A DNA stretch of 64,000 nucleotides, taken from contig NC_088803.1 of NCBI RefSeq assembly GCF_011386835.1, positions 54,746,001 to 54,810,000 on the forward strand, read 5' to 3'. Below, piece after piece: positions 11,001 to 31,200 of this stretch. Origin of the DNA: Chrysemys picta bellii. Lineage: Eukaryota. Position 1 is the stretch's first letter. Each line of letters opens with the position of its first letter. The position numbers were made by a program, and so were the translations under genes. The notes below the pieces were generated by a model. That model did no database searches. It had not been told where the DNA came from and worked only from the letters and a program-made list of their open reading frames with translations.

Positions 11001-14000
11001 TGACCTGGATGAGGAGCCAGGGGTATGGAGCCAGCTCTGAGCTGCTTCTCCTTTCCCTAGTTCTGGCTGATGCAAAGCCAACTGACAAGGAATTTCAGGG
11101 GTGATTCTAGGCCCCCAGCAGCGTTGGGATGATCCCATCACTGCTGTAACCCAGTCAGCCTGGCCTGGAGGTTGGGACCTTCCCTTTCCCGTCCCAACCG
11201 TGACACTGTTCTCCAGGCCTGGGGCACCTGCAGGTCAGACTATTGCCGTGTGCTCTGCATGGGGCTGCCCCTTACGGCCAGCCAGAGTCTGGCGCTGGTG
11301 CAGAACGCAGCACTCGCTTACTGAGCGGGGCACTTCTCTGGGAGCACATGACCCCATGCGCCGGGATCGGCACTGGCTGCCCATTGGTTTCTGCAGCCCT
11401 AAATAGCCTGGGACTGGCCTTACCTCAGAGATCAACACCTCTCTCCCTGGCCAGGCCTCCACTGCCTCTGTTGGAGAGGCACTCAAATTGGATCCCTTAG
11501 TTGTAGAACAGAGAGGGTGGCTGGCAGGGCACTCCTCTGTGAGGGCCCCAGGACTCTGGAACTTGCTCTTCCTGGGCTGAAATACCCAAATGTGGTGACC
11601 TGGGCACAGTGCCCAGTCCTCTGTTTGATGCAGGTTTGGAGGGGCTGAGGTTTTGCGGCTCAGAATGAGGAAGTGGCAGGGAGGAGCCCATTGTGTAGGT
11701 GGCTAACTGGCTGAGCTCCTGTCTGCAAGATTATTCTAATGCTGCTGGGGTTTGGTTGTAATACTAATGATCTGTTGGGGCACCTACATTCCGGGAGAGG
11801 CGTCTCTCATCTTAAATTGAAGTAAATAAACCTTAATTGAATTTCACAATTTTCTGCTCGTTAATAGAGAGGCGCTGCAAACTCCTAGTGAATGATCAGC
11901 TTCGCCTTTCCTCAGCCAGAGTTTGAACTATGGGAATGATTAAGGGATTGGAAAACCTGCCTTCAAGGAGCTCCATTTATTTAGCTTAAAGAGAAGGTTA
12001 AGGGGTGACTTGAGCCCAGTGTATAAGTACCCAACTGGGGCACAGAAATTTGATGGGGACTTTTCAGTCTAGCACAGGGGCGGGCAAACTTTTTGGCCTG
12101 AGGGCCGCATCGGGTTTTGGAAATTGTATGGAGGGCCGGTTAGGGTCCTCTCTGGTCACTCGCTGTGCCTCCCTAAACAGCCAGGCGTGGCCTGGCCCCC
12201 ACCTCCTATCCACTCCCGGCCCCCCTCAGGACTCCTGACCCATTCAACACCCCCCCCCCCCGCCGCCCTCTGACCGCCCCGACCCCTATCCACACCCCTG
12301 ACCGCCACCCCAAATTCCCCTGCCCTCTATCCAACCCCACCTGCTCCCTGCCTCCTTACTGTGCTGCCTGGAGCACCGGTGGCTGGCAGCGCTACAACCA
12401 CGCCACCTGGCTGGAGCCAGCCAGTCCACCGCACAGCACAGAGCACCGGGGTGGCTGGGCTCTACAGCTGCGCTGCCCCAGGAGCTTGCAACCCCGCTGC
12501 CCAGAGCATTGCGCCAGTGGCACGGTGCGCTGACGCTGTGGGGGAGGGGAAGAGCAGGGGAGGGGCCAGGGGCTAGCCTCCCGGGCCAGGAGCTCAGGGG
12601 CCGTGCAGGAGGGTGCCGCGGGCCGTAGCTTGCCCACCCCTGGTCTAGCAGATGAAAGTCTAACACAATCCAACGGCTGGAAGTTGAAGCAAGACCAATT
12701 CAGACTGGAAATAGGGTGCAAATTATTAACAGCGAGAGTAATTCACTATTGTGACAATGTACCAAGGGTCATGGTGGATTCTCCATCACTAGACATTTTT
12801 AAATCATACGTGTGTGTTTTTCTGGAAGATCTGCTCCAGTTCAAACAGGAATTAATTCAGGGAAGTTCTCTGGCCTGTGTTATTTGGGGGGTCGGGGCAG
12901 TATCAAACTAGATGATCAGCCAGGTCCCTTCTGGCCTTTGTGACTCTGCGTTCATGTTAGTCCAGTGATCTGAGCCAGATATGCCGCGTGTAAAAGCTGT
13001 TATAGGAATCAAATTAATCTGTGAATGCCTCTTGGGGAGAGAACCTGTCCCACAGCTAGCCTCCTTCCTGGTCCTCTTGGGGCCCTGAAGTACAGCAGCT
13101 TCCTGGAGGCAGATAACCCTTTCCTCTCTCCCCACAGGCTAAGCTGCTGTTCTCTGATGGCAAGAAGGTGATACCCAGACTGATCCACGAACAGTCAGTG
13201 CCAAAGGTAGAGCTGAGCTTCAGGGACCTGGGCTGGGAGTCTGGGGTTGGGCTTCTAATTGCTTTTTCTGTAGCAGTGGCTTGGCAGAAGCTAGGAGAGA
13301 CCCATAGCAGTATTCGATTCTTATCTGCTGATAGTGATGATCAAGAAATGGAACCAGAACCTGTAAGGGGGTGGAGCAGGGATCTCCTAGCCAGTCTGTC
13401 CTTTGTAAAGCCACCTGGCTGCAGAGGAGACCTCTGTGTAAGTGGATTTCTTGCCTCTCTGTCAGTCCTTCCGATGAGGAAATGGAATTGGGGAGAGTGA
13501 AGGCTGGGAGAGGAGAGGACTTGGACAGAGCAGTGAGGGGCCCAGACCTGGTCTCTGCCTTGGGCAGGTAGAACCCCATGTGCCCATCTCTAAGGATCAG
13601 GCTGGGGTGGCTCCACCTGCTTGAGTGGCACGCATTTCTAGGTGCAACGGAGAAGAGGGTAGTTGTCTGGGTGGCTAGAGTGCTTCCATGAGAGAGACTG
13701 GAGAGGGAGAAGGGCTGTGTTCATTCCATCACCAATTTCTTTGCCAGCGTGCCCGGCAGATGGAAGAGGAATCGAGTCGGCGAGGAAGCCCTGTTCCCAA
13801 AAAGGTAAGGACCATGCAAGGACTCCACCCCGACACACTGCCTCATGGGGAAGCTTGGCCCTCGTTTCTCGTGCAGGCCTCACTGGCTGCTCCCTCCCCA
13901 TCCCTGAGAGAGGGTTAGGAAGGGGGCAGCCTCCAGGGCAGCCTGTGGCCCCCACTCTACTCAGCAATGCTAGCTCCTTTTGCCCAGTCTCAGCATTTCT

Positions 14001-17000
14001 TATAGCTGCTCTTAACCGTTTCATCATGTGGTTGGGAGAGCCGCCTTCCCAGCAGGGAATGCACGTGTGCTTCTCAGGTGAGTGCTGGATGAGTGAGCAA
14101 ATGAGGGATTTCTCTCTTGCAGAGGAAGGGGCGACCTCCAGGGCAGAGCCTGCTGAATGATCGTGGAGCCCCAGGTGTGGCCACGTAAGTGTGGAGATAA
14201 AAGGGGGGAGACACAAGGCTGGCTGAGGAAGGGTAGGGCAGCCCAGCTATCTTTCTCCTGGTGTGTTTCTCACAAATGGATTGCCAAGTGGGCAAGATGC
14301 TTTCAGCTGAGGTTGACTCGTCCTCTCTCTGAGTCCAAGCCCTACAGGGAGGCAGTTCCAAACACGAGAGCTGCAGGGCAGAAGGTTTTTGGCTGTGGTG
14401 AGATTGTGCATTTGGGCAAACAGGAGGCTCAGGCGAGGGGAGTGAAGACACACGTGGTCGGCTGGAGCCTGGCCACGAAGGGGTTTAAATGCAAGCTCAA
14501 ACAAGCGAATGAGGAACCTATAGATGGGAGTGCTGTGGCCCCACTCCCTGCCAGTGAGAAGGCAGAAGCATAGTGCATGTGCTGGAGACAGGAGGTCAGG
14601 GACTCAGAAGCCATAGAGAAGGAAATTGCAGTAACAGAGGTGACGAAGATCTGCCGAGAAGATGGAGACCTGTGTAGGATTTGGGCCAAGTCAAGGCAGC
14701 TGCACATAGGGGCAGTGAGCCACGCAGGTGGCAATGACAGATTTTCAGCCATATGGGATGTAGAGGAAAACTCATGGCCAAGCGTGGCATTCAGGGTAGG
14801 GCCTCTGGAGGGAAATGGAAGGTCTGAGTCAAGAAGGAAGAGGAGTGTCTGGAGCTCAACTTGGGGGCGCCTCCTGGCTAAGAGAAGCATTTCTCTGTGT
14901 GAGACCTGCACAGCTTTTCTTCAGCTAAATGAGCCTGGTCAGTGAGGCCGGGGGGAGGGTCACTGAAGGGCCTGAAATATGTGTGGCTGAGTATTGTCAG
15001 GGTAAGGTTCAAGGCAGGATCAGAGGAGCCAGGGGCCATCCAAGAGAGCAGAGGCCATGAGTCTTGTGGGACTCAGAGAGGAGGGGTTGATGTGGAAGAG
15101 GATCCAGCACCAGAGAAATGGGGGGGTGGGGGCGGAGGGATATTCAGGGGTGCTCTGTCTGTCTGGAGAGGGGGAGGGGATGTATGTCCTGATCAGGAGA
15201 GCAGAATCGTTTCAGGCTGTAAGCAGCTTGGATTAGTAAAATCTAGGGCTGGCAAGATGACCAGCCCTCCCCATGGGGTCTGCTCCTGACAGGCCCTTTC
15301 CTAGTGCTTTTTATCCAGTGTTGATTTAAATTCTTTTGTGGCTTCTTGGCATGAGTCCTCTGGGAATTCAGGCCTCTTCTGTGTTTTCCCCGTCAGGTGG
15401 AAGCTCAAATCCTGTGAGCCAGTGCGCCGGGAGGGACCGAAGGTACAGTGTGCAGCTGGCTGCCTTTCGCTGGGCTTGGCTCAGTAGTGCTCCACGCAGC
15501 CTCCCTTCTCCCCATTGCCTCTGGCAGTGATCGTCCTGCCACCCACAGGAACAGAGGCTGATTCTAGGCCAGGCTTTACCCAGCTCTGCCACCTCCCTGC
15601 AGTGGCAAAGTAGGGAGAGCAATGGGCTGGGTGGAGGCCCTCATCTCCTGCCTCCCTACCCACTCCCCGGTGCAGCCCAGCAGCTTGGAGGACATAGACT
15701 CCTCCTGGCTATGGATGATCTGTCCCAGGGCAGCACGTTCTGCTGGGAAGGCCAGAGAAACTCCACTGCCTGTTCGATCAGTCAAGGTATGAGACGTATT
15801 TTCCCCTCCATGGAGCCCACGAGCCTGCAGCTTGTCAGCCCCACCAGAGCCACTGGGGCCCCTGCAAGAGTTTGCCACAGAAATCTGAGGCTCAAAGGTG
15901 GGGTGCTGGATCTGGATCTGTTGGGTTTCTAATCTCTGCCCCTTTCCCAATCGCTCTGTAGTGGGATCCAGCCCGGCTGACTGAGTCCACAACCTTTGTG
16001 CTGGGATCTCGAGCAAACAAGTAAGGAATCGTCCTGTGGGGTGCTGGCTCTGTGCCCTGTAGTTCTGGGTGAGGGGAAGAAGGGGGCAGCGGCACTGTCT
16101 CTGGGGCTGGAGCCCATGGTTCTCCTCTCACTAGTTAAATATCTCTGCACTCTGAAGCAGAGTGGGAAGGGCACGGGCTCTGGGGACGGAAGGAAGCCTC
16201 CATACATCACACTTCAGCTGCCCCTGTGCACAGGCCTAACCCCCCTTCCCCCACCATGTTCCTGTTTCAGGGCTCTTGGAATGGGAGGAACCAGAGGGCG
16301 ACTCTACATCAAACACCCCCATCTCTTTAAGGTCAGAAACCTCAGCACAATGCTTCCCTTTTTGGGGTTTGCTCAGAACTTGCTTGTGACGGGGGTGGGG
16401 AATATATCCTTGTGCTTGTATGTTCTGTCCCCTCTCACACCCTGCTGACGTTGCTTGTCGTCTCCTGGGGCAGGGATGTTACCTCACAATAGATTTAAAA
16501 ATGCTGTTAAAGCTAATGTAATACACTAGACTTGCTTCCCGTGGGGTGATGAATTTGCCTGGCACAGGAGGCTTTGCCTTGAGGAGTAAGCAGGATGGGA
16601 CTGAGTCCTCATTCATAGACGATCTCTTACTGGGAGACATGGGGTTACCCCTGGGTTTCCACAGAGGAGGACGGGCCTGGGCTCTGAGTCCACACCCAGA
16701 AGTTGCCCCATGATGGTGGCTACAGATGTTGGTATGTCGCTTGTGGTGTTCTCACCTTGCTGCTCTGTTGCAGTATGCGGCTGATCCTCAAGACAAGCAC
16801 TGGCTGGCAGAACAGCAGCACATGAGGGCCACAGGGGGCAAGATGGTGAGTGTGGCCAGGCCTGGCTCCTGCCACAGCCTGGGATCTTGATGGGGACGGG
16901 GAGAGAATCGTAAAGTAAACTGGTTCAGAATTAAGTGTGCAAATAAGCAGAAGCCAGTGTAGTAAGCAACGGATTCCAGGGGCCCGGGTTTGCTCGTCCA

Positions 17001-17958
17001 TACTGCAGCCCCTTCAGAGCACCGTCTGGCAGGCCGCTCTCTGCACCTCGTCACTTGGGGCTGAGATTTGGCAGCTGTTGCTTCAGCCTAGGAAGTCATC
17101 CGCTTTGATGCGACTGTTATGATGATGAGGGTTTGTAAGAGTGAGCAAGGTGGAACCGTGAGATACAGAAAACCACTTCCCCTGGACTCTCAGGAGCAAT
17201 TCTGCTCACACCTGACCTGGTTTCTTTGAGGTATTGGGGGATGGGTGCTATTTACAAAGCTAGCACCGCTACTTCATGCCAGCAGATCTCATTTCTGAGT
17301 AGCCAAATGGAAAATCTTCTTAGCCTGTGTATGTTCAACCCGAATGGCTCCTAACCATCTCTCGTTTCCCAATTGCTGCAGGCGTACCTCCTCATAGAGG
17401 AGGATATTCAGGATCTGGCAGCCAGTGATGATTACAGGTGAGGCAAGGAACCAAGACTTCAGCTGTGCTGAAATCCCTGCCCTCTCCCCTTATAAAACAA
17501 GAAATGACTGGGGGAGGGGATGGGGGAGTCGTCATACCCACAGGGCGCAAGAGAGCGAGCAAGGTCAGGAGGCAGAGTGGGTCCTGCCTAGTATTGTGCT
17601 CTACCGATGATCTCAGCACCCACGACTGGGATGAGACTTCTCAGCACCCAGTGTGTGCCCACCATGCTGCACTCTCCTGAAAATCAGACTTCTCCTGGGA
17701 GCCCTGCTGTCTGGACAATCTTACCTCAGTCGTGGGTGCGGAGTTTTCCTGAAACTGTGACCAGACAGTGTCTGTGTCCCTCCCCACATGCTCACTCCTG
17801 TCTCCCACTTGCTCACCAGGGGCTCTCCTGATTTGAAGCTGGAAGAACTAAAACCTTTTATCCCACCTGCATGGATGACTGAAAAGATGCAGAAATATAT
17901 GGAGACACTTCGCCATGAAGGGGACCCACAGCCTCCAGAGGGAACCCATGAAACATAA
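8094..17958 (+). CDS. DNTTIP1: Deoxynucleotidyltransferase terminal-interacting protein 1 (MiDAC subunit), 13 exons, ~321 aa
   Basis: Exons 8094-8171, 8463-8533, 9700-9796, 10320-10418, 13138-13206, 13748-13804, 14123-14184, 15397-15442, 15962-16020, 16271-16331, 16774-16845, 17382-17437, 17820-17958; phases are consistent. Peptides PWNIMIKHRQVQRRGRRSQM, FTDPAVSMDLLRAVLQPSINEEI, RKGRPP, WDPARL..STTFVLGSRANKALGMGGTRGR, YAADPQDKHWL. AATAAA at 18291-18296. Confidence 0.96.
9112..9376 (-). mobile_element. CR1 3' UTR fragment, antisense in DNTTIP1 intron 2
   Basis: Reverse complement of the CR1 tail (CATAAGAAC..., CCATCTAGCCC, GGCTAATAGCC). Confidence 0.8.
11930..12930 (+). mobile_element. Old CR1 3' fragment, interrupted by a hAT MITE
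   Basis: Degraded ORF2 (SNGWKLKQDQFRLEI...SPSLDIFKS) and a CR1-like tail; continuous across the MITE. Confidence 0.7.
12075..12642. mobile_element. hAT (Charlie-type) non-autonomous element
   Basis: TIRs CAGGGGCGGGCAAACT / AGCTTGCCCACCCCTG; perfect 8-bp TSD GTCTAGCA (12067-12074, 12643-12650). Confidence 0.9.
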
Positions 17959-18908: not shown

Positions 18909-19228
18909 GTCCCTGCCCAGGCAGCGTGGGGGGTCTCTGCCTCGTGGAGCTTGCTACCGAATAGAGAACTTAAGGGCTGCCCTGGAAAACAAGCTGCTTG
19001 TGCCCCAGAGTCTGGGCTCCCTGGCACGCAGCACATGGTGTTCTGCTTGTTACATGTGTGTGTTCCCCAAGGCTGGGCTAGGCTGGCTGCACAGGGCGGG
19101 GGAGGCTGTGGGTGCAAAGGCCTGTGCAGCTGCCTAGGCCGGGTGGAGCAGGCCGGCTCTGCAATGCGGAGGCCCGGGCTGGCTTGACCCTCTCCCAGCA
19201 GCCGGGCCCGTCTGCCCTGGTCCCTAGG

Positions 19229-19878: not shown

Positions 19879-22800
19879 ATGGCCTCGCAGAACGCGGACC
19901 CCGCCGCCCGGCCCAGCGCCGCCCGCAAGGGGACCGAGCCCGGCAGCAGCGCGGCCCGCGGCTCCGTGGGGAAGCGGTGAGCGGGCGGGAGGGTCCCGTC
20001 CGGGCCGGTCCGGTCCGGTCCGGTCCGGTCCGGCACCGGGCGGGCCGGGGAGCTGCGGGCCGGTGGGTTGGGGCGGACCGGCGGGAGAGGCCGGGCGGGA
20101 GGGACCGGCCAGTGGGTTGGGTGGACCGGCGGGAGGGGAGCTGGGGACCGGCGGGCGGACCGGCGGGAGGGACCGGGCCGGGCGGACCGACCGGGGAGCT
20201 GCGGGCCGCGCCCCCTGACCCTGTCCCCTCTGTCCCGCAGGCTGCAGCAGGAGCTGATGGCGCTGATGGTGAGTCGGGCCGCCGGGCGCTGGGGCCGGGC
20301 CGGGCCGGGGGATGCTCCCTGGGGCCGGGGCGGGTTGGCCCCGGGCCCGCCCTGGGGGCTGCGGCGGGGGGTGGCCGGGCCGGGCGCTCGCTCCTAACCC
20401 GTGTCCCGTCCCCGCTCAGATGGCCGGCGACAAAGGGATCTCCGCCTTCCCCGAGTCGGACAATCTCTTCCGCTGGATCGGGACCATCGACGGTGCCGCT
20501 GGGACGGTGAGCGAGGGGCCGAGCTGGGCTGGGGGGACTGGCGAGCCCGCGGCTCTGGGGAGCAGGGGGGCACGGAGGGGTCAGGGTCCGCCCGGCTAAC
20601 GCCTCCCTGCCTGTCTCCCCCAGGTGTACGAGGAGCTGAGGTATAAGCTCTCCCTGGAGTTCCCCGACGGGTATCCCTACAACGCCCCCACCGTCAAGTT
20701 CCTCACCCCCTGCTACCACCCCAACGTGGACACGCAGGGCAACATCTGCTTGGACATCCTCAAGGACAAGTGGTCGGCGCTCTACGACGTCCGGACGATC
20801 CTGCTGTCCATTCAGAGCCTGCTGGGAGGTGAGGCTGCCTGGGCATCGCCCCCCGGTGTCCTGCGGCTCTGAGTTCCTGGGCTCCCCTTTCCCATCCCAG
20901 CCTCCTCCCGCTCCCCTTGCTTGCCCAAAGCATGTCCTTGCCTCCGAGTGTGCACCGTGATCAGCCCATCACGCTGACCAGTATTGCTTCATCATTCCCT
21001 TGTGCTCCTCCATCTGCTGTCTCATCCGATACTGGGACCGTCACGGCAGCTCTCTGGGGCAGGGACGGAGCTTTTGTTAGGTTTGTACAAGGCCTGGTAC
21101 GATTGCGGCTTTGTCCGTGCCCGGGGTTCCTAGGTGCTACCATGATACAAATAGAATAACTGCTACAGCGGACAGCGATCAGGCTGGGGTGTGAGCCAGG
21201 GGAGGAAGGCATCATGGCGGGAAGCATGTGACCAGACGCTAAACAACCAGTGGGGCCAGGGGACGATGGAAGGGCCAAAGGAGCACTCAAGGAGATGAGG
21301 CCATTGCGGAGAAACTAAATGAATTCTTTGCATCAGTCTTCATGGCTGCGGATGTGAGGGAGATTCCCAAACCTGAGCCATTCTTTTTAGGTGACAGATC
21401 TGAGGAACTGTCCCAGATTGAGGTGTCATTAGAGGAGGTTTTGGAACAAATTGATAAACTAAATAGTAATAAGTCACCAGGACCAGATGGTATCACCCAA
21501 GAGTTCTGAAGGAACTCAGATGTGAAATTGCAGAACTACTAACTGTAGTCTGTAACCTATCACTTAAATCAACTGCTGTACCAAATGACTGGCAGATAGC
21601 TAATGTGACACCAATTTTTTAAAAGGATTCCTGAGGTGATCCCAGCAATTACAGGCCTGTAAGCCTGACTTCAGTACTGGGCAAACTGGTTGAAACTATA
21701 ATAAAGAACAATATTGCCAGACATATAGATGAACCTAATTTGTTGAGGAAAAGTCAACATGGTTTTAGTAAAGGGAAATCATGCCTCATCAATCTACTAG
21801 AATTCTTTGAGGGGGTCAACAAGCATGTGGACCAAGGGGATCCACTGAATATAGTGTACTTAGGTGTTCAGAAAGCCTTTGACAAGGTCCCTCAAAGGGT
21901 CTTACGCAAAGTAAGCTGCCATGGGATAAGAGGGAAGGTCCTCTCATGGACTGGTAACTGTTTAAAAGACAGGAAACAAAGGGTAGGAATAAATGGTCAG
22001 TTTTCAGAATGGAGAGAGGTAAATGGTGGTGTCCCCCAGGGGTCTGTACTGGGCCCAGTCCTATTCAACATATTCATAAATGATCTGGAAAAAGGGGTAA
22101 ACAGGTGGCAAAATTTGCAGATGATACAAAATTACTAAAGATCATTAAGTCCCAGGCAGACTGCAAAGAGCTACAAAAGGATCTCACAAAACTGGGTGAC
22201 TGGGCAACAAAATGGCAGATGAAGTTTAATGTTGATAAATGCAAAGTAATGCACATTGGAAAACATAATCCCAACTATACATATAAAATGATGGGGTTTA
22301 AATTAGCGGTTACCACTCAAGAAAGAGATCTTGGTGTCATTGTGGATAGTTCTCTGAAAATATCCACTCAATGTGCAGCGGCAGTCAAAAAATGAACAGA
22401 ATGCTGGGAATAATTAAGAAAGGGATAGATAATAGGACAGAAAATATCATGTTGTCTCTATATAAATCCATGGTACACCCACATCTTAAATACTGTGTGC
22501 AGATGTGGTTGCCCCATCTTTAAAAGATGTATTGGAATTGGAAAAGGTTCAGAAAAGGGCAACAAAAATGATTAGGGGTGTGGAAGGGTTTCCATATGAG
22601 GAGAGATTAATAAGACTAGCATTTTTCAGCTTGGAAAAGAGACAGCTAAAGGGAGATCTGATTGAGGTCTATAAAATCATGACTGGTGTAGAGAAAGTAG
22701 ACAACACAAGAACTAAGGGTCACCAAATGAAATTAATAGGTAGCAGGTTTAAAACAAATAAAAGGAAGTATTTCTTCACACAACCTGTGGAACTCCTTGC

Positions 22801-23675
22801 CAGAGGATGTTGTGAAGGCCAAGACTGTAACAGGGTTCAAAAAAGAACTAGATAAATTCACGGATGGTAGGTCCATCAATGGCTATTAGCCAGGATGGGC
22901 AGGGATGGTGTTCCTAGCCTCTGTTTGCCAGAAGCTGGGAATGGGCAACAGGGGATGGATCACTTGGTGATTACCTGTTCTGTTCATTCCCTCTGGGGCA
23001 CCTGGCATTGGCCACTGTCAGAAGACAGCATGCTGGGCTAGATGGACCCTCGGTCCTACCCAGTAGGGCCGTTCTTATGGAGTGGGGTGAGCGTGTTGCT
23101 GTGTAAGAAACAGGAAGCCTACTCTGTCCTCACACTGACCCTCCCGTCTCCCAATCCTCAGAGCCGAACGTTGAGAGCCCCCTGAACACACATGCGGCCG
23201 AACTCTGGAAGAACCAAGCAGGTGAGTGTCTCCCGTTGGGGTCCGTTAGGCACCGTGGCTCTGGGTTACTCCTGGCTGAGCTGCCTACAGGCCCAGCGCA
23301 GGGTTACAGCTGCCCTCCAGTGCCTGGGCATGGAGAGGAGGACAGCTGCCTTCAGACCTGTTTGGGTAACAATCCCCGTCCCCAGGGACGGTACCTGATT
23401 GGGGGGCCTGGGACTTGGGCACTCACTCGGCCTGGCTTCGTTGCCGAGCTCTGGCCCAGTAGAGGAGGGTGTCTTCCTTCCTAGCCTGTCCCAGGGTGAC
23501 TTCCTCTCGCCAGCTGCAGGAGCTGGAATAGCCTGAGTGGAGAGAGCCCCGGGTGAACCCCCTGTGCTCCTCTGCGAAGTCTGCCCCTCTCCAACAGCTC
23601 TCCCCTCCCTCCCCAGCCTTCAAGAAATACCTGCAGGAAACGTACGCAAAGCAGGCCAAGAGCCAGGAGACCTGA
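19879..23675 (+). CDS. UBE2C: Ubiquitin-conjugating enzyme E2 C, 6 exons, 178 aa
   Basis: Exons 19879-19976, 20241-20268, 20420-20506, 20624-20828, 23162-23221, 23617-23675. MASQNADP...[10 protein letters not shown], catalytic [15 protein letters not shown], ends [24 protein letters not shown] at 23815-23820. Confidence 0.98.
21250..23079 (+). mobile_element. ~1.8-kb 5'-truncated CR1 LINE in UBE2C intron 4
   Basis: RT motifs ([18 protein letters not shown]; [20 protein letters not shown]; KFADDTKL) with frameshifts and stops; ends GTTCTTATG. Confidence 0.93.
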
Positions 23676-24492
23676 TGCCTGTCCAAGCCGCAGCTCTTTG
23701 TCTGTCTGTCCCTATCTGCTCTCTGGAACTGTCCTCTGACTGCTCTGTACAGGACTCTGTATCATACGCTGGTTTTAAATTAATTCTGCAGGTGGAACCC
23801 ACGGTTACTGTATAAATAAACTCTCGTTTTTTAACTTTGGTTTTGCACAGATCATGGTACTTGCATTGGGCTGGGTGGTGTCTTGGGCCGCGGTGACCCC
23901 TTCTGGCCGGGCTGCCATGCACAGCAAGAACCGAGCCCAGGGCACTTGGAGCCAAGAGGGCCTGGCCTTGCCTTGAGGCAGCTCTCGGCTGCTGATCTGC
24001 CACCGCCTGGGGCCAGTCACCCCAGCAGATGGGGATTCAAGCACAGATCTCTGTGACCTCCACGCACCTCCATCACCACCACCACTGTGGGTGTGGAAAT
24101 GGTTCCCTGGGGCAGGGGCACTTTGTAGGCTCTACAGGGAACGAACACAAGTGGGAGAACGACATTTATTAATCCCCCAGCAGTCTCCTCTGCCACGACT
24201 CCCTCCAGTGCCGGGGGGGTGGGGGCTCTTTGCCACCCTTCCCTTGGCCTGCAGTGCCCCCCCACCTTGCCACCGCTATCCCACATGCTCCCTGAGCTGA
24301 GTGCCCTGCTGGCAGGGGAGCCCTCAGCCAACCTGTTCCTACCCCAAGCCAGAGCACCTCTTCCTGCTTCTCCCAGCTGGGCGCCATGTGCTCAAAGAAA
24401 CTTGCCTTTCTGGGCTGCTGTGGCCAAGGGTCCCTGTTCTGGGTTTTCTCCTGGGGGGAGCAAAGTCCTGCCCCTTTGCAGGGGGGCGCTAG

Positions 24493-26009
24493 TCATGACA
24501 ATGTGCAGCAGAGTGCAGGCCAGCCCTGACGCTGCCCGCAGCACCCTGGGCCACCTGCCACCTCTGCAGCCTGTCTCTCGCTGCACGACCCCTCTGCCTC
24601 ACAGGCCAAGCTGCTGCCCGGCCCGGCCTCTTCTGTGGCCTCCACTGTCCAGACAGGGACATTGACTCTGGTCTCCATCTCCAGCAGCATGGTCCCCACA
24701 CGCTCAATCTGCTCCTCCAGGCTAGGGGCAGCACCCAGCTGCTCCGTGCTCCTGGCGCCCTTGCGGCTTGGCCTCCTCCACGGCTTGTGCCCTCCATCTG
24801 TGGCCTTCCCCGTGAGGCCAGTGCTCACCAGCGGCCCCCCCCGCCCCTGCAGGGGGAAGAGTTGGAGGAGATGATGGGCCCTGTGCAGGTCTTGGTGGAA
24901 GAGCTCCAGAGCGGACAGGGACAGCACCCACAGCCTCTCCAGCTCCTGCCGCTCCTCGGGGCTGGCCAGCGGCTGCCTCAGCCCGGCTAGGAGCACGTTC
25001 CGCAGCCCTGCAGGGAGACGTGCATCCAGTGTTACCAGCCCGGGGAGGGAAGCTAGCAGAGCACAGCACTGGGCGGGCTCGAGTGGAAGGTAATGGAACA
25101 GCTGCGCTAGCAATGAGCCAGCTGGGATGAAACAGCCTGGTGACGGAGGGCCAAACTGTGAGCCGCGCGCCAGCCGTGGGCTTGTCCAGCAGGCTTGCCC
25201 AAGACATCTGCCTGGTGTATTCTCACCCAGGGGTGGGGTCCCATGCACACCCTTGCAGGTGCAGAACTCTGCCCCCAGCGGCCAGGTCTAATGGGGCGAG
25301 GGGCAGTGGGAGGAGATTAAATATTAACTGTCCCAAGGGGTAGCAAGCAACCCCCTCCCCCCATGGCTCGCAGAGGGATGAGCCCTGGATCGATGCCCCA
25401 CCTGAGCTCAAGTAGCTCCCTTACCTGGCAATGCGAGCGGGCTGTTACTCGCCATGGGGACAAGGCACTGGCGAGGGCTGCCAGCATTCGCTCTCAGAAC
25501 TGCCCATTACTGCCGTGTGTCAGGCCTGGCTCTGGGCAGAAGACGCAGGACAGGAGGGAGGCGGACATGGGGAGCGGGCTCCCATTCGAATGCAGAGGAA
25601 AGCGGGAGCTGGCCGCGCGCGGGCAGGGTGGTCTGTGCGCTGTTAGACCAGCCCAGGCTGTGAGCGCTGTAGCCCCAAGCCTGGGGAAGAGCAGGTGCCC
25701 AGCGCACAGCCCCTGTGCAGTGAGCACCCAGGGGCTGGACTGAAGGGCATTGGCTGTGGGGCAGCCCCAGGCAGGGCAGCACAGCATCATCTCCCCCCCT
25801 CTCTAGCCCTGTTCCTGGCAATAACAGGCTGGGCTCAGTTCCTTACCCTTGCTGAGCTCGTGCACCTCCTTGCTCCGCTCCTGCAGCTCCTCCCGCAGCC
25901 GGGGTGAGTCAGCCGTGCCCCCCAGCTGCAGCGCCAGCTGTCTGTGCCACACAATGACTTTGCTCAGGGAGGTGTGGGCGGCTGCACACTCTCCTCTCAC
26001 CTCCCCCAT
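24493..26009 (-). CDS. RGS9-binding protein (R9AP)-family paralog, 2 coding exons, ~225 aa
   Basis: Exon 1 26009-25847 (MGEVRGECAAAHTSLSKVIVWHRQLALQLGGTADSPRLREELQERSKEVHELSK, donor GTAAGG). Exon 2 25007-24493 (acceptor CCTGCAG; ELERLWV, LFPLQ..PLVSTG, EMETRVNVPVWTVEA; ends LCCTLS*). These match R9AP motifs (VGGSADSQNLRQEL, EFERLWV, MEMKVNVPRWTVQA). The ATG at 26009 has strong Kozak context; weaker in-frame ATGs lie at 26036 and 26087. Minus-strand AATAAA at 24165-24170. Confidence 0.85.
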
Positions 26010-28258
26010 GTTGTGGGAGTCAGGCACATGGGACATCTGCCAGGGCAGGGACCCTGCTGCTGGGTGTTCCCTCTCCAGCGCCTGCATGCAGCCCAGGGCC
26101 TCAGCTGTGCGTGGCTTGCTCCAGTGCCTGCTGGTGGATGGGGAAGCGGCACCAGCCAGTGCGTTGGGGTGCACAGCAGGCTGGTGCTGGGGCCTGCTGT
26201 CGAGGTGGGGTCCTCCACACCTGGGTGTAGCCGGTGGGCTGTGCCACAAAGGGCTCTCACACCCACTTGGGGCCTCGTGCAGGCTGGGGCCTGCTGCTGT
26301 CCGTGATGCAGAACCCCTCTTATCAGCTCCAGCTGTTCTCCCAGAGGCAGGCACCAAGTGGGAAGGCGGCCTGGGCCGAAGCTGTCAGTGGAGTGACCTC
26401 CCCGGGGCAGCAGTCTGGAGGAGCCGGACTCTCCCACACGCCAGCACCGCCTCCCTGCTCCAGTCCTGTCACCGCAATGCTATGCAGTTCTCTTGGTGGG
26501 AACGGGCCTGAGCCGGCGCTGCCAGCCCTGCAAACTGGCTGTCGGAGCCCCTCGGCGTCCCGGTCCCGGGAGCGGCTCCCTCGCTCTCCTCTCCGCTGCT
26601 GGAGTCTCCGCTAGCCGGGCCGAGCCTGAGGCAGATTGTTAGGGGCGGGCTCTGGGGTCCCAGGGGAGCTGCGGCAGGTCTAGGCAGGCGCTGCCTCGCT
26701 ATTTTCCGTGGGTGGGTTTAACCCATGAGGCCCGGGGGGGAGTCCTGGCCTGTGGGGATCCCAAAGTTGCATCTTCCCCCTAGCTGGAAATGTGTCTCCG
26801 GGTGCCATGGCCTGTGGTTGTGGCTCCGGGCTCCCCGGTTGTGGGATCCCACCTGCTGACGGGTCCGGGGGGCAGATCTATGGGCAGCAGGGGGTGATGA
26901 CAGGCCCAGGGTCTGCCCCGGTCTGGCTGTCTCCCTCCCCACCTGAAATGATTACGGGGCTGTTTGAAAGTGATCCTCTAGCATGACCCCCCCGGGGGGG
27001 GGGGCAGTCCCCCGCTGGCGCTGCCTGGGCCACGGCCGTGGATGTGGCCCTGCATCCCAGGGGCTGGCCCAGGGCCCATTGGGGTGGGGCCGGCAGCCTG
27101 AGCTGTGATGGCTCTGGTGACTGGAGCAGAAGCGGTTCCTGGAAGGGAGAGCAGAGGGGGCCCTGACATGGGGTCACCATGCAGCCTCTCTGCTACGCCA
27201 GGCTGGTGATGGCTGCCAAGGTCCCTGGCTTGGAGGGGCTCAGTGTGACTCAGCCTCCCCAGAATAAGAGCACCCCCATATTCCCAGCCCCTGTGGCCTG
27301 TGGGCCAGCCCTGCCCTGAGGTAAAGGGATTCCTCAGTGGTGCCCTGGTCCCGGTCCCAGGCCCTGCCCCTCCAGCTGACCCTGCAACCCCACAAGGGAG
27401 GGCCTGGGTTGCTGCTTGGTTCCTGCACCACAGCCCCTGTGAGGTGCAGAGAGCTGCCAGCCAGCCAGCGAGCTCCTCCCCTGCGGAAAATCTGAGCTCA
27501 CTGCTGGCCTGGTCCCCAGAGGCCATGTGGGAAAGGCAGCCCAGAGCCCAGAGTGCAGCCCCCTGGCCCCACCCAGTCGGCATCAGCCCAGCTGAGACCC
27601 ATGCCTGCCTGGCACTATCCCAGGCTGTGAGCATGGGGGCAGGAGCTGCTCAGCCGTAGATGGCCCTGCTTGCTGAGTGGGGCACCAGGGGCTGCTCTGA
27701 GCAGTTACCAAGTGCTGTGAGCAGGGCTGGACCGGCCACATGTGGTCATACCCACCCCAGGCCCTGGCAACACTCCCCCCCTTCCCTGCCCCAACTCCAG
27801 TGACATGCGCCGAGGCCCGGGCACCTCCTTCAGTGTCATGCCCCTGGGAGGACCTCACATCCCCCCACCCGCTTCCTGCAGACTCCTCCCTGGTTGCCTG
27901 TGCTAGGGTCTCTGGCCAGAGGGTCCCCCACCCGCCCCACTCCCCATATCAGAGCCAGCTAGAATCCAGGCTCCGGCAGGTTCAAACTTTTGACCCTTTT
28001 AATGAGGCTTCAATACTATACACAGCGTTTACAGACGGGGGAAAGGCTCTTTCCAGCCGTGTGAGAGGTGAGTCCACAGCCCACCAGCCCCGGGGCGCGG
28101 CAACAAGGGAGCAGTGGAACTGTACAAAGCGAGCACTTCACGGGGCAGGGGAGGCCAGGCCCTCTGGCTGGAGGCTGCTCCCAGAGTGCGCTTGGCTTTG
28201 CTGTGCGGAGATGGAGCAGGGCTGGAAGCAGGGCCTGGCTCGCAGGAATGTCGGTCCT

Positions 28259-31200
28259 TTACTGCACACCTTCCATCATCTTCAGGAACTCTGCAGGCAC
28301 AAGCAGCCAGACACCTGGTCAGTGCTGGGGGGCTGGGAGCTCAGGGGCGGGGTTGGGAATGGGGATGGGGATGGGGAGGGTGCACCACACCCGTCATGCA
28401 GCACAACTCTCACAGACACCCCCAGGCGCTGGGCTATCAGGGTTCCCTGGCCCCGGCACTCTGTACCAGGCATCCCTCAGCTCAGTGGAGAGGTTGGGAA
28501 GGTGGAGCTCTTGGGGCTTAGGAGAGCTCTGAGCACAGATCCTGCTGGGCTCAATGTGGAGTGGGGAGGGGAGGAGGCCGGCTAAGGGTGGGGGAGTGAG
28601 AGCTCCCCTGGGCAGCCCCACAAAGCCTGGGTGAGGGAGCCCTGGGCCTCACCATCAAAATCGATGCGTCCGTCATTGTTTTTGTCCCCGTCTTTCATGA
28701 GCTCCTCGATCTCCTCCTCAGTCACGCTCTCCCCAGAGGCTCGGAAAATCTCGGTCAGCTCCTCGGCGTCGATGTACCCATCCGCGTTCCTGTGGGGACA
28801 GGGCATGCGGCTCTGAGTGGGGCTGGCCGGGCGGGCGGAGAGCAGGGGCAGCAGGGGACTCTGGGCCCCCAGCCTGGCCCCTGCTCTAGCAGCCGACCCA
28901 GTTGGTGCAGCTGTTCGGGAGCCAACCCAGGAGCCTGGATGACTCAGGCTCAGAGGGAACTTGGGGAGAGACGGGCGTCCCCTGAGCTGAGAGGGAGGCA
29001 GCAACGTTACTCTGGGGACAGAGGTCTGTGGCCACGGGTGAGGCGGCCTGGTCAATGGCCACTGGGCCAAGGACCTTCCTGCAGCCCGGGGGGGCAGCGG
29101 GACTCAGAACCCCCCACGCTGAGCTGGGCTCCCCCGAGCCAGGCCGGCGGAGCTGAGCCCATGCCACGCTGACTCACTTGTCGAAGATGCGGAAGCACTC
29201 TGCCAGCTCCTCCTCCGACTTGCCCTTGGCATCCTCCTTCATCTGCCGCACCATCATGACCAGGAACTCTTCGAAGTCGATGGTGCCGCTGCCTGCGGGA
29301 AGAAGCCGCCCCGAGGTCAGGAACCGCCAGCCCCTGCCCCCTCCCCAGGGATTGTTCCAAGAGGAAGACGCTGCTCACCATCTTCATCCACCTCCTCGAT
29401 GATGGCGTCCAGCTCCTCCTTGGTGGGAGTCTGCCCCAGCATGCGCATGACGGTGCCCAGCTCCTTGGTGCTGATGTCCCCGCCGCCGTCCGCGTCGAAC
29501 ATGTCGAAGGCGGCCTTGAACTCTGCAGGACAGGGCCGAGTTAGCAGGGAGCTGAGAACGCTCCTCAGCTCTGCCCAGCGCCCATCGGCATGGCCAGCGC
29601 TGCTTGGCTCTGAGCCCCGGCATCCCCCAGGTACCGAGGGGTGGGCACAGCCGTGCAGACAGCCCAGTGCCCTCCCAGGCTTGGGAGTAGGATGTGCTGG
29701 TCGGGTCTATCGCCCTCTTCCCTTCCCAGGAGAGAGCAGGTCCTGGGGGAGTCCTGGGGGCAGGTCCCCCTTCAGAGTCACCTTGGGCCAGCAGCTCCTG
29801 TCCTTTCCCCTCTCTGCGGGGAGCTCTGACAGCCCCTCCTGCCCTGTGCCCAGAGGGGCTCGGTTACACTCACCCGCAATCATTTCCTCGCTGAGGAAGG
29901 ACCGCGCTTCCGCCTGCTGGTCCGTCGTCTGCAAGGCAAACAAAACAGCTGCTCACCCAGAGCTCCAGCCCGGGCCCTGCCGTCTCTTCTCGCAGCAGGC
30001 GGGGAGCGGCCAGCTCTGTCCCCTCTCTGCAGCAGGGTGTAGGTGAGGCGGGTCCCTGAGCCACCCAGACCCCAAGGCTGAGCACTGCCACCCCACCCCC
30101 AGCACAGCCCAGCACCTGAGCTCAGAGCCATGCAATTCTGGGCTCAGTCGCACGTCCCAGAGCCCTGCCCCCTGGGCCACTGCCCACCATGGCCCCTGGC
30201 CACTGCCCACCATGGCCCTGGGTGCAGGGCGTGCAGGGAAAGGCAGGCGTGGGCGAGTTACATATGTGATTTACACAGATTATCAGCACTTCACAAGCAC
30301 TGTCGGCTGTGCACCGTCCTGGGAGGTCCCCAGCCAGACCTGCCAAGCGTCTTGTGAGCTCTGTGGCTGGCTCCGAGATCCTGCAGGCCACGGGGAGGCG
30401 CCTGTGTGAACAGACCACTCATGGCCAGTTGCTGCTGCTGGAACCCGGGTCCCTCCCTGCCATGACCTGCCCTCAGACTCAGCTCCCCCACTTCCCACAA
30501 TCCTCTGCCCTGCTGGTGCACATGGTCATCCCCCCCCGGACGCCTCTCCCTCTCTGGGTCATTGGGATTGCGGGGCGCAGCCTTGAGGCTGGGCGTTAGC
30601 CTGAGCGGCCGGCTCCCAGCTCTGCTGGGTGCCCGGTCACTAGCCCAGGCCAGACTGCTCCATCGACACCTGCAGCAGGACCTGCGTGCTGGGCGTTCCC
30701 AGCCCCGGACGTGCGCGGCTATTCTTAGCAGAGACTCGGCTCCCTTGTAGGGGAGCAGCGGGACGCCAGGCCCACGCACCTGTTGGAATCGGATTGAGTT
30801 ACTCCTTGAGGGCCAGGCCCACGCAGCTGGCGGGAGCTTGCGGGCCTGCAGACGGGTGTCTTATGACCCAGAGCTCAGCTTACTGGCCAGCCTGTGCTCA
30901 ATGCTGCTCCTGAATCCCAGCCAGAGCTCCGCTTCCTTGGAGTCGAGACGCAGCCTCCTGCCCCCCAGTGCAGCACTGCCCCACCCCAGCGGATGCCAGG
31001 ACACCAGGGTCCCTGTGCAGGACAGGGGCTGCCTCAGGGCTTCCTCTCCCAGCTGAGTGAGATGGGAGCAGCCCCTGCCCATTCCTCACCCAGCCCTCCT
31101 GGCCCCTTAGTACCTGTGCCCTGTTCTACACCCCTGGGTCGGCGCCATTCGGGGGCTGGGGGTGGGGGGTACAGTATGGGACAAATCTGCAAATCGCAAC

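Follow-up and report, generated by a model that had tools for sequence, protein, structure and literature searches.

The window analysed here is a stretch of 64,000 nucleotides (nt) from the turtle Chrysemys picta bellii (contig NC_088803.1, positions 54,746,001 to 54,810,000). Its minus strand carries a two-exon gene between TNNC2 and UBE2C, whose exons join in phase 1 to give an uninterrupted product of 225 amino acids (aa). The explanation that we favour, with a probability of about 85%, is that this gene is orthologous to R9AP-like of other vertebrates (RGS9BP3, zebrafish zgc:109913). The RGS9 anchor protein exists in three ancient paralogues, R9AP-like among them. The gene, its flanking elements including the untranslated regions (UTR), and its neighbours are located as follows.

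26009-26007, minus strand: start ATG in the strong Kozak context CACAACATGG, with A at -3 and G at +4
26009-25847, minus strand: coding sequence of exon 1, 163 nt (54 codons plus 1 nt), for helix 1 and most of helix 2 of a predicted syntaxin-like bundle
25846-25008, minus strand: intron of 839 nt, GT..AG, phase 1, the sole coding intron
25007-24493, minus strand: coding sequence of exon 2, 515 nt (170 codons plus the stop codon TGA at 24495-24493)
24496-24552, minus strand: tail GPGCCGQRQGWPALCCTLS with an upstream CC pair and a terminal CC-TLS (CaaX, X = Ser)
24145-24492, minus strand: 3'UTR with inferred transcript end, AATAAA at 24170-24165
26010-26087, minus strand: in-frame upstream extension of 26 codons with weak-context ATGs at 26087 and 26036
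26400-26640, no strand assigned: patch enriched in CpG, 400-600 bp upstream of the ATG, possible promoter or exon of the 5'UTR
20642-20830, plus strand: UBE2C core exon (UQ_con match, E 1e-26), the downstream convergent neighbour
27998-28294, minus strand: 3' end of TNNC2 with the last coding piece, stop codon at 28261-28259 and ATTAAA at 28003-27998, the upstream neighbour on the same strand
29386-29538, minus strand: TNNC2 exon with the first EF-hand (domain match)

An original prediction, made from the letters of the window, had described an intact open reading frame (ORF) of ~225 aa in two exons with phase-1 splice sites. The same structure was found in four other turtles, an alligator and a bird. 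The splice donor reads AAGG/GTAAGG and the acceptor CCCTGCAG/GG, located at 25008/25007, where the slash marks the border between exon and intron. Exon 1 can be aligned to exon 1 of the alligator from 25994 downward, and exon 2 covers the remainder of helix 2, helix 3, a linker predicted to be disordered, a SNARE-like helix with an NVPVWTVEAT block and the Cys-rich tail. The strong Kozak context of the ATG and a polyadenylation signal belonging to the gene itself had also been predicted, and both were verified. The AATAAA at 24170-24165 is the single copy on the minus strand within 23300-24600 and converges with the plus-strand AATAAA of UBE2C at 23815-23820, with ~350 bp between them. The predicted CpG-containing region upstream of the gene exists as well, although it constitutes a modest patch and no large island: positions 26400-26599 contain 16 CpG at a GC content of 0.70 and a CpG observed/expected ratio of 0.66. 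The UQ_con and EF-hand exons confirmed the location between UBE2C and TNNC2.

The 251-aa models provided by NCBI for other turtles begin at an upstream weak-context ATG. As the 26-codon extension evolves neutrally among turtles, with a ratio of nonsynonymous to synonymous differences per site (pN/pS) of 0.92 compared to 0.35-0.47 for the rest of the gene, contains no ATG in Carettochelys and lacks an alignable counterpart in the alligator, we regard the ATG at 26009 as the likely start codon. Positions 26010-26087 are, judged by this pattern of substitution, probably 5'UTR and not conserved coding sequence. The 251-aa model was set aside on account of the neutral extension, and database models of this kind are probably over-extended. 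In Natator, valine (GTG) occupies the position of the window methionine at 26009, and start-codon use may differ between turtles.

A search with exon 2 revealed 83 homologous protein clusters, all of them from turtles, crocodilians or birds and nearly all named "regulator of G-protein signaling 9-binding protein(-like)"; the best match was the Terrapene protein with 92% identity. The NCBI annotation "RGS9-binding protein-like" is already present in turtles, crocodilians and birds. A HMMER profile constructed from 12 sauropsid proteins and searched against 1.84 billion representatives yielded 148 hits. In an IQ-TREE phylogeny of 67 near-full-length rows, the window protein was placed inside a clade of 26 rows with a support of 100/100, together with proteins from zebrafish (zgc:109913, Q504F3), coelacanth, sturgeon, bonytongue, seahorse, skate, shark, the frog Ascaphus and the degu. 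The sister of this clade is a group of proteins with transmembrane tails (96/83), which the names of the source entries (newt, seahorse, knifefish) identify as R9AP-B. Two more transmembrane-tailed groups, canonical R9AP (caecilian, Galemys, echidna) and a hagfish/lamprey group, fall outside, as does a clade of 29 invertebrate rows with Saccoglossus, nemertean, mollusc and annelid sequences among them. A second tree, built from 45 named rows and rooted with the invertebrates, reproduced the R9AP-like clade (100/99) and its sister relationship to R9AP-B (98/92), apart from canonical R9AP. Within R9AP-like, this tree follows the species tree, i.e. frog, (degu + marsupials), (turtles, (alligator, birds)). 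All 13 residues which are invariant or nearly so across the family are kept in the window protein. Membership in the R9AP/RGS9BP family and distinctness from the true RGS9BP, as originally proposed, are thus both upheld by the phylogeny, which does not place the window protein as the true RGS9BP orthologue.

Canonical R9AP and R9AP-like occur together in Calonectris, Buteo, bilby and coelacanth. Among crocodilians, Alligator sinensis has a canonical R9AP of 237 aa and A. mississippiensis an R9AP-like protein, and the 15 members listed for a sauropsid canonical cluster of 235 members include birds and Alligator sinensis. From these crocodilians and birds we infer that canonical RGS9BP and R9AP-like coexist in turtles, too.

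The gene is not new, since the three paralogues R9AP, R9AP-B and R9AP-like were published by Lamb et al. in 2018 (PMC5795056) and the turtle gene is annotated by NCBI. The three paralogues contain no, two and one coding introns, respectively, and R9AP-like carries a further intron in its 5'UTR (PMC5795056). In a preprint from 2025 the genes were named RGS9BP, RGS9BP2 and RGS9BP3, and the function of RGS9BP3 was stated to be not known (bioRxiv 10.1101/2025.10.31.685797); participation of R9AP-B and R9AP-like in phototransduction is not established (PMC5795056). The designation "third family member" used in the original prediction has to be amended, because the R9AP group comprises three paralogues and R7BP comes in addition, which makes the window gene one of four. 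Its suspicion that the gene may be annotated but unstudied was exactly right. As existence, family and distribution had been published or annotated before, the gene does not constitute a new component of vertebrate G-protein signalling, and its interest rests on the unstudied function and on the lipid tail described below. The zebrafish protein Q504F3, the Xenopus tropicalis protein Q5M8K0 and the alligator protein P0016 bear the plain name "RGS9-binding protein" and yet belong to the R9AP-like clade; such naming can mislead orthology-based work on phototransduction.

The order SNX21(PX)-TNNC2-gene-UBE2C-DNTTIP1 was found in Terrapene, Natator, Emydura, Carettochelys, Alligator, the gannet Morus and the degu, and in zebrafish the R9AP-like gene adjoins ube2c/dnttip1. 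Because the order is common to sauropsids and the degu, and the zebrafish gene also lies beside ube2c/dnttip1, the position between TNNC2 and UBE2C is ancestral and no novelty of turtles. In each of the six sauropsid loci (Terrapene, Natator, Emydura, Carettochelys, Alligator, Morus), the phase-1 intron falls at the identical codon; its length ranges from 144 to 944 nt. R9AP-like is distributed from sharks to birds; the gene is intact in turtles, as predicted, but its retention is no turtle peculiarity. For the human interval, absence of the gene is taken from the published report that almost all placentals have R9AP only, the degu being the single placental known to possess R9AP-like (PMC5795056). 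A query with the degu protein led to marsupial orthologues of 224-228 aa in opossum, koala and bilby (P0395, P0396, P0397), which end in the layout ..GCC..(11 aa)..HCIVA and thereby resemble the CC...CaaX arrangement of the turtle. Since marsupials keep R9AP-like, the loss occurred within or at the base of placentals. The claim of a loss in mammals hence holds for most placentals and not for opossum, koala, bilby and degu.

The protein fold was predicted with AlphaFold2 on an alignment of 46 rows. The target was the Terrapene orthologue, since no single reference exists for the spliced window protein. The model (mean predicted local distance difference test score, pLDDT, of 75.5) contains helices at residues 2-27, 36-65, 71-104 and 151-168 with pLDDT values >90, while residues 105-150 and the tail are disordered. 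It suggests a bundle of three helices resembling that of syntaxins, then a disordered linker and a single short SNARE-like helix. The best structural matches in Swiss-Prot were Q5M8K0 of X. tropicalis and Q504F3 of zebrafish, both of which are R9AP-like proteins. Mouse, bovine, chicken and human R9AP followed with 33-34% identity and template modelling (TM) scores of 0.64-0.66 normalised by query, then R7BP (13-17% identity, TM 0.47-0.53 by query), syntaxin-12 and syntaxin-7. The family profile matched the Habc domain of syntaxin-12 (2dnx) with an E of 2e-11. In a precomputed table, PF28461 marks canonical R9AP and is recorded for no R9AP-like protein.

No transmembrane helix was detected along the window protein: the maximum Kyte-Doolittle mean over 19 residues is 0.65, compared to 2.5-3.0 in representatives of R9AP and R9AP-B. 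The tail contains one basic residue and a CaaX end. Its terminal CC is invariant across the alignment of 12 sauropsid sequences. Of the 75 sauropsid representatives in which the last exon is present, 61 have a CaaX end, which is CC-aaX in 59 of them; the 14 without CaaX are mostly UniRef-only models with C-termini diverged from the conserved tail. CaaX ends were also identified in marsupials (CIVA), frog (CMVS), coelacanth (CVIS), zebrafish (CLLS), shark (CIIS) and skate (CTIA). The upstream CC pair is common to turtles, marsupials, frog and bony fish and was lost in crocodilians and birds. In the CaaX motif, located at positions 24496-24507 of the window, the 12 turtle and crocodilian representatives have Ser as X and those of birds have Leu (47 of the 61). 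Under the accepted rule for CaaX motifs, Ser or Ala as X is predictive of farnesylation, and Leu of geranylgeranylation. Read from its sequence, the tail is predicted to combine sites for prenylation and palmitoylation, and the motif predicts that the same orthologue carries a farnesyl group in turtles, crocodilians, marsupials, frog and fish and a geranylgeranyl group in birds. The lipid tail of R9AP-like is absent from the paper that defined the paralogue, where CaaX is mentioned for GRKs only (PMC5795056).

Nothing essential distinguishes the window gene from the R9AP-like/RGS9BP3 representatives Q504F3 and Q5M8K0, with which it shares the clade, the phase-1 coding intron, the UBE2C/DNTTIP1 neighbourhood and an architecture of bundle, linker, short helix and Cys-rich CaaX tail without transmembrane helix. 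R9AP (RGS9BP) is the transmembrane (type IV) anchor of RGS9-1/Gbeta5L in photoreceptor outer segments. The likeness to it extends over the helical region, with 33-34% identity and the family-invariant residues kept, but R9AP has a C-terminal transmembrane helix where the window protein has the predicted lipidation motif. R9AP also lies at another chromosomal site and evolves much more slowly, and, as the original prediction had stated for mammalian RGS9BP, its coding region is intronless (PMC5795056) whereas the window gene has one coding intron. R9AP-B (RGS9BP2), the sister clade, shares the helical core and has kept a transmembrane tail and two coding introns (PMC5795056), neither of which is found in the window gene.

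In neurons, R7-RGS/Gbeta5 is anchored by R7BP (RGS7BP), a palmitoylated shuttle protein. Although it lies outside the clade of the window protein, with 13-17% identity in the structural alignment, the turtle protein probably resembles it in working principle, combining a syntaxin-like bundle with a C-terminal cysteine lipid anchor in place of a transmembrane helix. R7BP uses a polybasic stretch and a palmitoylated CC without CaaX (PMC2171691), while the tail of the turtle protein lacks a polybasic stretch and has a CaaX end. The Habc domains of syntaxins (2dnx, syntaxin-7, Sso1/Sso2) have a similar three-helix bundle, and Foldseek produced matches to closed syntaxins; the window protein differs in lacking a SNARE motif of full syntaxin length, an 18-residue helix being modelled confidently, and a transmembrane anchor.

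Selection was assessed by pairwise Nei-Gojobori estimates of the ratio of nonsynonymous to synonymous substitution rates (dN/dS) with bootstrap intervals. The values amounted to 0.25-0.65 with intervals excluding 1, except for the two closest pairs, Terrapene-window (0.26-2.21) and Terrapene-Natator (0.37-1.21). Deeper comparisons gave dN/dS values of 0.25-0.5 with upper bounds <0.8. Among turtles, pN/pS was 0.47 for the helical bundle, 0.44 for the linker, 0.35 for the SNARE-like helix block and 0.40 for the tail. The window gene is intact and, by these substitution patterns, under purifying selection.

Evidence for transcripts was sought in small contig sets, which are guessed to be RNA, none being on record as such. 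Words from exon 2 and the 3'UTR were enriched in them: this stretch, one third of the region, accounted for 59 of 78 matching words in set X3 and 55 of 68 in set X4, a possible sign of expression. Several Logan ORFs were rejected as transcript evidence because they contain intron and represent unspliced sequence. These are the bird ORFs P0039, P0045, P0055 and P0064, which had been considered as cDNA evidence and read straight through the short in-frame intron, and the turtle ORFs P0005 and P0113 together with the crocodilian-like P0018, which include intron sequence. The intron of Morus is 144 nt long (L006:10001-10783), and the bird intron is short, open and in-frame in several birds, so that ORF callers read through it and add ~30-40 spurious residues. 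In other vertebrates, expression of R9AP-like has been shown for frog and fish eyes.

From the known function of R9AP (PMC5795056) and R7BP (PMC2171691), a mechanism can be proposed for the turtle protein. With roughly even odds, by analogy to these two proteins, the helical bundle would bind the DEP/DHEX module of an R7-family RGS (RGS6/7/9/11)-Gbeta5 complex. The odds are again roughly even that the tail would keep this GTPase-accelerating complex on the membrane by means of a farnesyl group on the CaaX cysteine and palmitate on neighbouring cysteines. Such an anchor would be removable and would resemble that of R7BP in its logic more than the fixed membrane-spanning anchor of R9AP. The additional GPCR shut-off module implied by the original prediction is likewise conjectural. 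The wider picture is more tentative, and we put it at somewhat less than even odds: R9AP-like may serve as a third, reversibly lipid-anchored R7-RGS/Gbeta5 tether in the retina or pineal of non-placental vertebrates, with an anchor type tuned by lineage and with the placental loss amounting to a simpler G-protein shut-off. If so, the CC-aaX tail in place of the R9AP transmembrane anchor would provide non-placental vertebrates with a removable RGS anchor, and the split between farnesyl and geranylgeranyl lineages would parallel that between GRK1 and GRK7.

Several observations weigh against a conserved RGS-anchoring orthologue. Foldseek against the PDB gave nothing at E <= 0.001, syntaxin and Sso chains appearing from 7e-3, and Pfam gave nothing above threshold, only Syntaxin_2 with E of 0.09-0.25. 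The dN/dS values of 0.5-0.65 in several turtle pairs are high for a signalling scaffold, and in the 45-row tree the end branches of bird R9AP-like (0.06-0.13) are ~10x longer than those of canonical R9AP from the same species (0.004-0.015), which means that the function of R9AP-like may have drifted. The chief rival to the RGS-tether reading is a diverged non-RGS function: a true R9AP-like orthologue that has ceased to anchor R7-RGS/Gbeta5, or never anchored it, and has another membrane role, e.g. in trafficking or with a different DEP-domain protein. Such a role, which we consider unlikely though deserving of attention, would fit the faster evolution and the moderately high dN/dS, the fact that neither a part in phototransduction nor a function of RGS9BP3 has been established, and the syntaxins as nearest solved folds. 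Yet all residues invariant over R9AP, R9AP-B, R9AP-like and the invertebrate homologues are kept, the closest predicted structures are R9AP proteins (TM 0.62-0.67 by query), and anchoring of R7-RGS is the only known function of the family.

Very improbable is the assumption of a decaying or non-functional relic heading for the loss seen in placentals. The intervals of the closest turtle pairs that include 1, the failure to recover a spliced turtle transcript among Logan-derived proteins and a degu copy without CaaX tail could be read in this way. However, the long-separated lineages of five turtles, alligator and birds have all kept frame, splice sites, intron phase and CC-aaX end intact, the deeper dN/dS values stay well below 1, and the constraint is patterned, with pN/pS of 0.35 in the SNARE-like helix versus 0.92 in the upstream extension. 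It is hardly conceivable that the gene is the true turtle RGS9BP, relocated and provided with an intron. The plain names of P0016, Q504F3 and Q5M8K0 may suggest it, and canonical RGS9BP was not retrieved from a turtle, birds and Alligator sinensis being among the 15 of 235 cluster members listed; but the window protein belongs to a clade apart from canonical R9AP (100/99), has no transmembrane helix and a coding intron, and occupies a UBE2C-adjoining position common to zebrafish, and canonical transmembrane R9AP of 237 aa exists in Alligator sinensis, and canonical transmembrane R9AP also in birds that have R9AP-like.

The degu (Octodon degus, L007:10001-19022) likewise has its copy between TNNC2 and UBE2C, and the two main exons are the same. 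Its intron contains an assembly gap (N run 11193-17043), the annotated C-terminus derives from a third piece (18930-19019) without CaaX, and the protein forms a long branch; this copy may be decaying or mis-modelled. On the TNNC2 3' side, the alignment between species stops near 27960. In Terrapene, TNNC2 is directly followed downstream by an insertion of ~675 bp (window ~27966-27970 versus L001:7388-8064), which resembles positions 1031-1495 of the window (74% identity) and is presumably an interspersed repeat.

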